Assembly (NCBI RefSeq): GCF_033153115.1
Contig: NW_026889779.1
Span: 9,734,001-9,798,000, forward strand
Reading direction: 5' to 3'
From: Saccostrea echinata
Taxonomy: Eukaryota
DNA: 64,000 nucleotides
Position numbers and translations under genes: made by a program. Positions 55,102-59,492 of the stretch are shown here, one piece after another (positions within the stretch are counted from its first letter, which is position 1; the number at the start of each line of letters is the position of its first letter). The notes under the pieces were generated by a model. That model ran no database searches. It was given only the letters and a program-made list of their open reading frames with translations, and was not told the origin of the DNA.

Positions 55102-58100
55102 GGACAGACGCAACGTAGTTTTTACTTTATTTTTTCTATCTCCTAGAAATAAAGAGTTCCAATAATGATTCCGTAATATTTCCCGAATTGGGTTCGATTT
55201 TTACTTTCGATTACGTCCCTTGAGAGCTCTTTCGTACGTAGAGATAGTTTTAGGATATCTTTGTTTATGATGGAGAAAATTCGCGACAAAGGAGGGCGAT
55301 TTATCTCCAAAGGAAAACAAAGTAAAATAACATCGATTAAATGTAATAGGCAGAAGAATGTGGCAGTTGAGGTCCCTTCTACAAATTCTCAAGCTGATCC
55401 TGACGATCCACTGCCTATTCCAAGTAAGTTATCTTGATTTGTGTACTTGCAAATATCGTATAATAGACGTATAAGTAAACAACAAAGAAGGGCTAAATAC
55501 TTCATTGATTGAAGTTTAAGAAAACACTCTTAAGCATTTAGATATCTTTGTGTCGCTCATTCTTTTATGTCCTTGGTTATTTGTGGTAAATTTATGACAG
55601 ATGATGATTTCCCAAATCCAATCCACATTTTGGAGCATAACTATGCCTACGATCTATCAATACACGGAGACTGTGAAGAGGAAGTAGTTCCAGTGCTTAT
55701 TGATGACGAAGATACATCACATGTCATACAGTGGAACACAGGAAGAAGAATTGTTGAATTGGAATTTATTGTGAATAAACTTATAGAGGGTTGTTGTAAA
55801 TGTAAACAATCTTTGAATTTGAGAGACATTTGTGGTGAACAGAGATATGGACTAGGTTCCTTATTACATATCAAGTGTAATTTCTGTACCACAGTAAACT
55901 ATGTTCCCACAGGAAAACGCCATTCTCGCTCGGACAATAATGGGATACGAGCATTTGATGTGAACACAAAAGTTGCACTAGGTTTGTAATTATTGAATAC
56001 TGACTTTATCATTCATCTTCATATGATCAAAGTATCATCTTAGAATACAGTTATATTTATTATGGTATCTTGAGAATTTTTATTACATTGCAGGGATGCT
56101 CCATGCAGGCATTGGCGAGAAAAAATTATCTATGCTCCTAAGTGTACTGAACATCCCACCACTATCAAAGACCTCTTTGAAAACCTCTGAAAGACAAGTT
56201 GGTCGAGCAGTTGAAGATGTTGCCAAAAAAAGTTGTAAAGAGTTTGCTAATGCAGAGCAGGAATCAATTGGGTAATACTAATAAATCTTTGTACAGGACC
56301 AGTGTTTGATAGATTCTGTCCTCATATTTCTTTGTTATGACCCACACATTTGAAAGGAAATGGTGTATATAATTTTGTTAATAAACTATTGCTAGGCAAA
56401 TAATAAAATATCTCTGGCTATATAAATATGAGAACTGTAATTATCAGTAATGCATGCAGTATTCATCAAAATATTGTGCATTTATTTCTTGAATAATTTA
56501 TTTTTATTTTATTTATTTTTTCAATTTACAATCTGAAACATTATTTCTTTCATTTCATTTTTGATTTTGCAGCAATGATGACTTTTCAGTGTCTTTCGAT
56601 GGAGGATGGCAGAAAAGAGGTTCAGGGCGATCTTATTCAAGTTTGTCAGGTTTGAAAAATTAGTAATTTGCAGATATATATATATAAAGATTTTTTCATA
56701 ACATATATGTATATTGGAATGACTTTGAAGAATGGATGTGTAAAAACCCAAGTATTATATATCTATTGTTATGCCATAAGACCATGATCAAAATCAAATA
56801 AAATCATCTCAATTGTAGGACATGCTGCAATGATAGGTAAAGAGACGGGAAAATGCATCGCCTATGCAACAAGAAACAAGTTCTGCAGAGTGTGTGAAAG
56901 GGCAGAGAGGACAAAAAAAGATATCCCTGAACATGACTGCAGGAAGAATTGGTCAGGTAGTTCTAAGGCAATGGAACCAGACATGTGTATAGGTAAAATA
57001 ATTGTATAGTGTTTTTTGTATAAAGTCTGATATGCTTGGTATTATACAAAATATCAACATGATCAATGTAAATGTAAAAACACAGCAAAATTTTCTCACA
57101 TGATTGTATGAGTCAGCGAACATCATTTTGATTTTTTCTATTGTTCATGTTAGAATATTATCATAACAGGTATGATGAAGGAACTTCAGGATAGCAACAT
57201 TCATGTTGGAAACATAATTATGGATAACGATTCCACAACAGTTGCGAGAGCTAGAGCTGAAGTAAATCCGGCCCTAAAGAAGCAATGTGATAGAAATCAT
57301 ACTCTAAAACAATTTACAAATAAGCTATACGAGTTGAAAAAATCTAAAAACTACAAAGAATTGAATAGTAAGACAATTCAACATCTGTCAAAATGTTTCA
57401 AATATTGCATTTCCCAAAATGAGAATGATCCCTCGGGTATGAAGAAAAACTTAGAGGCAATTGGAAGACATGTTTTTGGTGATCACAGTTTCTGTGAATC
57501 CTGGTGTAAATATTTAGCTTCACCACTAACATACAAACCTTGGCAATTACCTTATCACAGATATCTGAACAATCAAGATCTAAAGAGTGACTTGACATCT
57601 CTACTCAGCTTATACATATCACAGGCAGATAAACTAGTAGACCTGGGCAGTACACAACCTAATGAAAGCCTTAACAATACCATTGCTAGCAAGACTCCAA
57701 AACAAAACTTTTATTCAGGATCAGAAAGCAATGATTTCCGTGTTGCAGCTGCAATTGCCCAAAAAAATTTGGGTCATCATTATGTTACAGAGGTATAAAA
57801 CTTGTATATTCATTTATTATTTCATAAAAGCAATTGTAAAGTTTCAAATCAATTATATTTCATTTCATTGAATTTCATTGTAGGTCAATGAGGTCTTGCT
57901 ATTATCCCCAGGTGAAATTACTTCTTCAAAAGCCAGAAAAATAGACTTGAAAAGGAAGAGAACTAAAGAAACTGAAGATACAAGTACTTACAAGAAAAAA
58001 AGGGCACAGAAAAAGATGGACCAGCATAAATCACAAGAGTCAGCAGAAGTGAGGGAAGGAAGAACATACGAACCAGACACAGATATGAACAACAATACTG

Positions 58101-59492
58101 ATCCAAACAGCATCAAGGAAATACCTCCACCTCTCAGCAAACCTGTACCTACTCCTATTACTGAGGGTCAATACACATTTGTATATTTTGACTTAGAAAC
58201 TACTGGTTTAGGTAATTATCAGTTTTACAAAAATAACTCAAATTGAAATTTCTGTCATTTATTTTACTATTCTCATGGATTGAATTTTGTTTTGCAGGTG
58301 ACGATTGTGAAATAACACAGATCGGGGCCTCTGTCAATGATGATGTGTTTTGTCAGTATGTTTTGCCATTGACTCAACCAATTTCTGCTTCTGCCACAGC
58401 TGTGTCTGGTATTGCTACACAGAATGGTTGCATGTACAAAAATGGACATGAAGTTCAGTGTATGAGGACACCAGATGCAGTGAACAATTTTATACACTGG
58501 CTTGGAAAATTTGGGAAAGTATTGCTTGTGGCTCATAATGCCAAGTTTGACTCTAGAGTTCTAGTGCATGTGTCGAGTTCCATCGGTATTAGTGCGTCAG
58601 AACACATAAGTGGGTTTGTGGACACATTATCTCTATTTAGAGAACTTTACCCAGGCCGCAAGAGTTATAAACAAGTGGACTTGCTGAAGGACCTGTGTGT
58701 GACTCATTATGATGCTCATGATGCCAAATCTGATGCCTTGGCCTTACAAACTCTTTTATTGTCTTTGTCAGTTTCATGTCAGATTATGATGAAGCATAGT
58801 TTTTCTACAGAATTTGTTGTAAATAATTTGAATTTTTTGATGATGAAAATGAGAAACATGCAATCATTGCAAAATCTTATTGATAATAAGATTTTATCCA
58901 AGTTTACTGTAAACAAAATTGCTGAAACAGGTCTTCATTTCCAGCACATTTTATTAGCTTACCAGAGAGACAAAGAAAACGGGGTAAGATCTCTGCTATC
59001 AGAAAAAACAGGAGGAAAAGCAAGAGTGACAGGAAATTCAAAAATTATTCAGTCTCTTCAGAATCATTTTATGAATATGAAAACATAAATGCATGTACAA
59101 CAACTTTCAGTGCTTTCTGTTGTATGTATGGGTGTATTGCATTTCTTTCTTCAAAGAGAGGTAACTCAGCTACAAACAACTATGCAAATTAGATTTTTAA
59201 CAAAAATCCAAGAAAAAAGGCTGGTTTCATATGCTGAAAACTCTAGAGTTTCATCATCTATTGCTGTAGTACTCTTGTAAAAAAAATTTGGAAGAAATAC
59301 CAGCTAAAATTACGTTTGAGGATTTTGGTATATTTTGCATAGAAAAACGCCAAATTTTCATCATATGTTATCTTTTCAAAACCCCTGGTAATATATTCCG
59401 ATTTTTGGCCTAAGAACATCTTAGGGGGCCTTCATTTTAAGTTAAGAATTTCTTGAAAAACTACCAACAGGTAATGTACGTTGCGTATGACC
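55102..59492 (+). mobile_element. Complete, apparently autonomous Kolobok-like DNA transposon
   Basis: 16-bp TIR GGACAGACGCAACGTA vs GGTCATACGCAACGTA (14/16), TTAA at 55098-55101 and 59493-59496, one intact spliced gene inside. Confidence 0.9.
55267..59088 (+). CDS. 902-aa DDE transposase-DEDDh exonuclease fusion; exons 55267-55423, 55601-55981, 56094-56271, 56573-56649, 56819-56992, 57170-57792, 57884-58211, 58298-59088
   Basis: Seven GT-AG introns with matching phases and 2709 nt without internal stops. Zn motif CxxC..CxxC; transposase SFDGGWQKRG, IMDNDS, CDRNH, QPNESLN; exonuclease FDLETTG, AHNAKFD, HDAKSD. Confidence 0.88.

Follow-up and report, generated by a model that had tools for sequence, protein, structure and literature searches.

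A 64,000-nucleotide stretch of Saccostrea echinata DNA (contig NW_026889779.1, positions 9,734,001 to 9,798,000; hereafter the window) contains, at positions 55102-59492, a mobile element that joins a transposase to a DEDDh exonuclease. We conclude that this element is very probably an autonomous, recently mobile transposon of the KolobokD lineage, with one eight-exon gene encoding a 902-residue protein. From the N-terminus, the predicted protein would carry a zinc motif, a Kolobok DDE core with two internal zinc fingers, a basic linker and, over its 300 C-terminal residues, an EXO-SAM module made up of a DEDDh 3'-5' exonuclease and a SAM-like PML_C tail. The fusion itself was already known. 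The parts most worth following are the tie between this module and the vertebrate Plex9 and PML exonucleases, and the existence of apparently intact copies.

The ends of the 4,391-bp element were read directly from the window, which contains no N bases. The termini are GG..CC, TTAA abuts each of them, and the 16-bp terminal inverted repeats (TIRs; 55102-55117 against 59477-59492 in reverse complement) are the same at 14 of 16 positions, forming the longest inverted repeat found in a search of 54500-60100. This is the arrangement that an initial annotation, made from the window sequence alone, had described. TTAA on both sides together with unrelated flanks was seen at six elements, full-length or deleted, that have both ends at one locus, namely the window copy and five others. 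The sole exception among both-ended elements was L009, which has TGAA on its left side. In the 923-Mb genome, the 800-bp stretches that flank the window copy on either side are each found at one place only. Since the flanks at other TTAA sites are unrelated and those of the window copy are single copy, the boundaries are not a product of chance. The repeat appears to continue outward into the flanking DNA (TTTC / GAAA), but this was rejected as coincidental because the other copies lack it.

We searched the S. echinata assembly (923 Mb in 425 contigs) for further copies. The C9 and C1 copies show 8 and 9 changes, respectively, in 4,391 bp (99.8% identical), and all 902 codons are open in both. 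Two other copies are damaged: the C25 copy carries a 1-bp deletion late in exon 8 as well as a displaced 5' end, and the C33 copy is 96% identical, decayed and stop-ridden. Internally deleted derivatives still have both ends, retaining ~190 or ~435 bp at the left and ~0.8-1.35 kb at the right. The genome-wide count therefore stands at three full frames, including the window, two damaged copies and the deleted derivatives. The family has amplified recently, and its copies lie at different TTAA sites. The initial annotation had considered the element potentially active, and the two further intact copies at unrelated TTAA sites bear this out. With its defined ends and three near-identical copies that appear intact, the family also offers a practical base for transposition and nuclease assays.

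The displaced ends of the damaged copies could be located. For the C25 copy (C25:10766920-10771214), the first 92-102 bp lie ~14.6 kb away (C25:10785813-10785914), and for the C33 copy (C33:29206664-29210871) the last 213 bp lie ~5.3 kb away (C33:29201159-29201371). This suggests later insertions or rearrangements inside these copies.

Eight exons joined by seven GT..AG introns give a 2,709-nt frame, in which 902 codons are followed by one terminal stop. The initial annotation had proposed this phase-compatible splicing, which we reproduced, and every motif that it quoted was located in the resulting model (Table 1). For exon 7, an alternative acceptor at 57893 (899 residues) was rejected in favor of 57884 (902 residues), since the NCBI models P0001 and P0151 carry the three extra residues at the exon 6/7 joint. 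Database searches were run exon by exon, or with P0151 and P0152, NCBI models that differ from ours by a few substitutions; the joined 902-residue model was used for frame checks, local comparison with retrieved proteins, and trees. Neither exon 1 nor the linker of exon 7 gave a significant match in Pfam.

Table 1. Features of the element at 55102-59492 (nucleotide positions are those of the window; aa, residues of the 902-residue model).
Feature	Position	Strand	Remarks
Left TTAA target-site duplication	55098..55101	.	Read directly; TTAA flanks other copies too
Left TIR, GG start (5'-RR)	55102..55117	+	First 24 nt same in L002, L003, L005, L006
5' non-coding end	55102..55266	+	TIR to first ATG; kept in internally deleted derivatives; probably holds promoter and 5' untranslated region
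Exon 1	55267..55423	+	aa 1-52; no Pfam match
Exon 2	55601..55981	+	N-terminal CxxC..CxxC zinc motif; PF20700 start (profile 1-78, E 4e-11)
Exon 3	56094..56271	+	PF20700 profile 80-135, E 1.4e-11
Exon 4	56573..56649	+	First catalytic D (FDGGWQKRG); motif also in Kolobok_1_CGi_1p
Exon 5	56819..56992	+	CCHC zinc finger past first D; PF20700 E 5.2e-21
Exon 6	57170..57792	+	MDNDS (second D), CDRNH, H..H..C..C finger, NESLN (E), transposase C-terminus; PF20700 E 1.3e-20
Intron 6 (91 nt)	57793..57883	+	Retention gives stop after two codons; joint kept in sister family
Exon 7	57884..58211	+	Basic linker RKIDLKRKR; ExoI motif FDLET at 58187-58201
Exon 8	58298..59088	+	Rest of DEDDh exonuclease (HNAKFD, HDAKSD); SAM-like PML_C tail 58855-59076; stop
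3' non-coding end	59089..59476	+	Common to deletion derivatives and short 3'-end fragments
Right TIR, CC end (YY-3')	59477..59492	-	Pairs with left TIR
Right TTAA target-site duplication	59493..59496	.	Read directly; also at other copies
N-terminal CxxC..CxxC	aa 117-148		
FDGGWQKRG	aa 247-255		
CCHC	aa 287-305		
MDNDS	aa 340-344		
CDRNH	aa 362-366		
H..H..C..C	aa 423-435		
NESLN	aa 487-491		
FDLET (ExoI)	aa 632-636		
HNAKFD (ExoII)	aa 719-724		
HDAKSD (ExoIII)	aa 780-785		
KIAETGL	aa 846-852		
GVRSLL	aa 868-873		

Exons 2-6 match successive parts of Pfam PF20700 in profile order. The Pfam name of this domain, 'Mutator-like transposase', is loose. Kolobok elements are defined by a TTAA duplication, RR..YY termini, and a DDD/E core with C/DxxH and a zinc finger located past the second D and ahead of the E; some lineages, KolobokD included, have a CCHC finger past the first D (PMC9587614). 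The window element shows the TTAA duplication and 5'-RR...YY-3' termini, in the form of its GG...CC ends. Its predicted DDE residues are D248, D341 or D343, and E488, and the C/DxxH signature follows the second D and precedes the E, with a zinc finger after it. This signature and both zinc fingers stand in the same order and places as in the description of Kojima and Bao, and the zinc motif and full DDE set that had been claimed for the N-terminal part are indeed found. Within the supplements of that paper the string DGGWQKRG occurs in a single row, Kolobok_1_CGi_1p (Data S5, Pacific oyster), which is collinear with exons 4-6 as read by eye.

In a brief section based on consensus sequences, Kojima and Bao (2022; Mob DNA 13:24, PMC9587614) introduced the name KolobokD for elements of molluscs, arthropods and cnidarians that encode a DEDDh (DnaQ) exonuclease. 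They likened this exonuclease to Exuperantia, TREX and ERI1 and proposed that it degrades DNA intermediates from the 3' end; Plex9, PML and a PML_C or SAM-like tail are not mentioned in connection with it (PMC9587614). With KolobokD and with Kolobok-1_CGi of Crassostrea gigas, the nearest named family seen, the window element shares TTAA, RR..YY, the DDE core with C/DxxH and a mollusc host. Like KolobokD it also has the CCHC finger just past the first D, the second finger before the E, and a DEDDh exonuclease downstream of the transposase. It differs in being an S. echinata family absent from the published lists, where Saccostrea is represented only by KolobokP from S. glomerata (PMC9587614). 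On these domain features and the by-eye collinearity, we assign the element to KolobokD. Since the same fusion had been described and named in molluscs, arthropods and cnidarians, the novelty that the initial annotation had considered for it falls away; the window element is a new family of that lineage.

We next turn to the exonuclease module, for which structure prediction was combined with profile searches. Exon 8 matched RNase_T (E 1.6e-9) and, past the exonuclease, the PML C-terminal domain PF25244 at 83.5 bits (cut-off 27.1; E 1.2e-23) over profile positions 1-74 of 75. The Pfam model thus spans the oyster tail at full length, in agreement with the PML-C-like helical tail noted in the initial annotation. 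P0152 corresponds to residues 598-902 of our model with one position different, and its AlphaFold2 (AF2) model, built with 116 relatives, had a mean predicted local distance difference test score (pLDDT) of 96.4 and showed an alpha/beta domain followed by a helical bundle. AF2 and Foldseek agree on an RNase H-like alpha/beta fold. The top Foldseek matches were 9MRC and 9MRD (target-normalised TM-score 0.89-0.90, 32% identity), which are structures of zebrafish Plex9.1 (PMC13659232). Next came the EXO+SAM structure of Exuperantia (5L80), with both subdomains aligned, and then TREX2 and TREX1. There were 440 PDB matches at E <= 0.001, and those listed were Plex9.1, Exuperantia, TREX1/2, exonucleases of the PolC and DnaQ types, and DinG. 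In sequence searches the top four PDB chains, 9MRC and 9MRD among them, were deposited as 'exodeoxyribonuclease III' (single-sequence E 1e-19 to 1e-27). A family profile gave E values of 1e-55 to 1e-66 for Plex9-type chains, 1e-17 for Exuperantia, 1e-14 for TREX2 and ~1e-11 for TREX1. The best matches for the oyster module were therefore Plex9-type chains by sequence and Plex9.1 by structure.

The active site was compared position by position. The ExoI, ExoII and ExoIII motifs align residue for residue with the best chain, 9l8b, which scored alongside the Plex9.1 chains, and supply the ExoI D-x-E, the ExoII D and the ExoIII H-x4-D of a DEDDh nuclease. This accounts for the DnaQ-like nuclease of the initial annotation, motif for motif. 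The motif histidines and aspartates are invariant or nearly so among 117 relatives. As modelled, the module is an EXO-SAM fold with all five catalytic residues and apparently intact active-site motifs. Human PML-1 PXL and Drosophila Exuperantia are likewise built of an EXO domain with a SAM-like helical bundle behind it, but they have lost the DEDD residues and bind RNA, whereas the oyster module keeps them all (PMC13659232 for PXL and Exuperantia). An apparently catalytically intact EXO-SAM thus stands beside the dead, RNA-binding forms of human PML-1 and Drosophila. TREX1 and TREX2 share the DEDDh fold and the 3'-5' exonuclease motifs but are far more distant (profile E ~1e-11 to 1e-14, against 1e-66 for Plex9-type) and lack the SAM-like tail.

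Plex9 and fish PML-CDE (9MRC, 9MRD; PMC10123124) share with the oyster module the DEDDh type and the same ExoI-III motifs. Fish Plex9 proteins are 33-41% identical to it. Most teleost Plex9 proteins lack the PML_C tail that the oyster module has, and PML-like proteins of paddlefish and sturgeon show the same EXO+PML_C architecture. PML-CDE and Plex9 differ from it in being host genes, which sit in the PML locus or descend from it, with an RBCC/TRIM N-terminus in PML proper and with no transposase, TIRs or TTAA duplications; the oyster module instead follows a Kolobok transposase N-terminus in a multicopy TIR element. The Kolobok transposase domain PF20700 was found in none of the 120 best fish homologues. 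The oyster module is thus homologous to the PML-CDE/Plex9 module and is not a family member in the gene sense. Judged from sequence, its homology to the Plex9/PML exonuclease is clear, and outside vertebrates no closer relative of Plex9/PML-CDE is known. According to the PML papers (PMC10123124 among them), the PML exonuclease domain dates to jawed vertebrates and Plex9 derives from the PML domain. These papers mention neither transposons nor invertebrates and give no source before jawed vertebrates, and our literature search found no paper stating a close link of the KolobokD exonuclease to Plex9/PML, nor any, among the papers searched, in which Kolobok occurs together with Plex9 or PML-like.

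For the direction of transfer between transposon and vertebrate exonucleases, we built two maximum-likelihood trees with a bacterial DnaQ-like root, leaving aside TREX, Exuperantia, ERI1 and PML proper. Transposase-linked and stand-alone invertebrate proteins were interleaved, and at least some of the 'stand-alone' proteins are partial transposon models, for example P0152, whose sequence matches the window element. The vertebrate proteins formed one clade (Shimodaira-Hasegawa-like approximate likelihood ratio test support 98), drawn inside the transposon radiation on weakly supported branches. Approximately unbiased tests did not reject a vertebrate clade outside all invertebrate and transposon sequences (p 0.84, 0.94), and the constrained trees scored above the short free searches. 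The trees thus fit both transfer from a transposon into a vertebrate TRIM gene and early capture of a host gene by a transposon. They neither favor nor contradict the suggestion of the initial annotation that such elements are a mobile source of PML-like domains. That the exonuclease-plus-PML_C of jawed-vertebrate PML (exon 9) and fish Plex9 arose from a KolobokD-type EXO-SAM, captured by a TRIM gene in an early gnathostome, is a possibility that we hold to be on the unlikely side. Studies of PML evolution nevertheless gain a concrete non-vertebrate reference group and a testable transposon-origin hypothesis for PML exon 9.

What would the exonuclease do for the transposon? The initial annotation had put forward end processing, escape of excised DNA from innate sensors and suppression of competing retroelements as candidate roles. 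In a cut-and-paste cycle, the transposase would bind the 16-bp ends, excise the element and insert it at TTAA. The tethered 3'-5' exonuclease would act in cis on DNA 3' ends arising from excision or integration, and its trimming of overhangs or flaps would let donor and target sites be repaired. We prefer this end-processing role, as a tentative proposal by analogy that may well prove wrong, on three grounds: the covalent link to the transposase behind a basic linker resembling a nuclear localization signal (NLS), the retention of the nuclease across families diverged to 35% identity, and the independent gain of DNA-processing enzymes by other Kolobok lineages, which carry a lambda-exonuclease-like (5'-3') nuclease, a His-Me nuclease or a RecQ helicase (PMC9587614). 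Against this role, a 3'-5' exonuclease acting freely might even damage the 3'-OH ends of the transposon, on which strand transfer depends.

The same module may instead serve protection rather than transposition chemistry, in the manner of TREX1, Plex9 or gar PML, by degrading excised or extrachromosomal DNA or retroelement cDNA and so avoiding DNA sensing or suppressing competing retroelements. Plex9.1 and TREX1/2 are its nearest solved relatives, and Plex9, gar PML and TREX1 act as LINE-1 suppressors as well as DNA-degrading enzymes (PMC10123124). Tethering to a transposase behind an NLS-like linker, however, fits action at the transposition complex, and the enzymes carried by other Kolobok lineages are DNA-processing enzymes, not immune modulators. 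We therefore regard a protective role as possible but doubtful. Less probable again is that the EXO-SAM acts on RNA, trimming or binding small or structured RNA in a way that might aid escape from RNA silencing. ERI1, for example, trims small interfering RNAs. The EXO+SAM fold is that of Exuperantia, PXL and Exuperantia bind UG-rich RNA (PMC13659232), and similarity to ERI1 was noted by Kojima and Bao (PMC9587614). Exuperantia and PXL lack the DEDD residues, though, while the oyster protein and the DNA exonuclease Plex9.1 keep them, and the sequence similarity of the module is far higher to Plex9 than to Exuperantia.

Several comparisons bear on whether transposase and exonuclease are made as one chain. 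The NCBI models P0001, P0151 and P0153 run from the transposase exons through exon 7 into exon 8, and a sister family in the S. echinata genome preserves the amino acids that flank the exon 6/7 joint. The ExoI motif sits at the end of exon 7, so that exon 8 alone would be an incomplete nuclease. Among 35 exonuclease homologues of at least 450 residues, PF20700 was present in 21 and PML_C in 33. Relatives from other phyla, as well as from molluscs, are single proteins of 820-887 residues with both domains (Mytilus, Argopecten, Pinctada and the wasp Microplitis), and several relatives of 640-780 residues are encoded on contigs of 2.9-4.4 kb, which leave scant room for introns. Together these comparisons give good, if indirect, support for one transposase-exonuclease polypeptide. 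Several points weigh on the other side. Our splicing is drawn entirely from GT-AG and phase logic, NCBI gene models and conservation; retention of intron 6 would end the frame after two codons and yield a transposase-only product; and P0152 is an NCBI model of 305 residues, on another copy, that contains the exonuclease only. Separate isoforms are possible, with intron 6 retention as a splicing switch between two products. That the two enzymes are mainly separate proteins, through intron 6 retention or an internal start, and that the 902-residue fusion is a minor form or a gene-model artefact, nonetheless appears improbable given the three models that cross the joint, its conservation in the sister family, and the fused relatives.

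As to the class of the element, a piggyBac or Mutator-like transposon or a domesticated host gene can be set aside almost entirely: piggyBac shares the TTAA target duplication and the Pfam label reads 'Mutator-like transposase', but piggyBac has an unrelated transposase domain, for which the exon-by-exon Pfam search of the window element gave no match, CCC..GGG rather than GG..CC ends and no exonuclease, Mutator/MuDR elements make target duplications much longer than the 4-bp TTAA seen here (9-11 bp according to the initial annotation), the core is collinear with Repbase Kolobok-1_CGi, and a fixed host gene would not occur as multiple near-identical copies that have TIRs and duplications. The preference of the initial annotation for Kolobok over piggyBac or Mutator is thereby upheld.

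Elements of this Kolobok-plus-exonuclease type are numerous in the S. echinata genome, where we counted at least 146 exonuclease matches and at least 158 transposase matches. When the two lists were paired by hand, ~44 of the 50 best exonuclease matches were accompanied by a Kolobok transposase match that lies upstream at 1-4.3 kb on the same strand, and most of these paired loci keep open frames, down to 35% identity. In this genome the module is almost always transposon-borne. As regards annotation, the many oyster and mussel proteins of the group named 'DNA polymerase III PolC-type-like' or 'uncharacterized' include transposon pieces.

Public names in this group deserve a separate remark. 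'DNA polymerase III PolC-type-like', 'three prime repair exonuclease 4' and 'exodeoxyribonuclease III' are attached to P0152, P0157, P0011, P0173 and others, and such names are misleading for transposon-borne or Plex9-type exonucleases. Some group members have repeated modules: P0047 (Anabrus simplex, 1333 residues) contains five tandem exonuclease-domain stretches, with no transposase domain found in it, and P0125 (871 residues) contains three.

A second Kolobok-plus-exonuclease family shares 44% identity with the window family in the transposase and 36% in the exonuclease. It has at least 17 copies with near-identical scores and open frames, for example C2:29020674-29025252, C28:14523852-14528431 and C33:30548758-30553337, and its transposase and exonuclease parts lie ~3.8 kb apart on the same strand. 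This family looks to have amplified even more recently than that of the window. Short elements of ~1-1.7 kb that are 76-88% identical to the window element (L009, L010, L012, L013 and L015-L017, on C23, C66, C40, C83 and C33) have been left with ~50-190 bp at the 5' end and ~0.7-0.8 kb at the other, in which a decayed exonuclease-gene tail survives, and TTAA is present at most ends. These non-autonomous elements derive from an older relative.

Among copies of a sister family, the ratio of nonsynonymous to synonymous substitution was 0.5-1.1 at ~1% divergence, which is what decay of inserted copies would be expected to give, and is uninformative on selection for the exonuclease. The sister family with the conserved exon 6/7 joint is ~75% and 56% identical to the window family in the two domains. 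Its introns 6 and 7 occupy the same places as in the window element. At L020:1264-2109 (C54, ~18107435-18108280), the homologues of exons 5 and 6 form one open frame and intron 5 is absent, so that, within one transposon lineage, families have come to differ by intron gain or loss.

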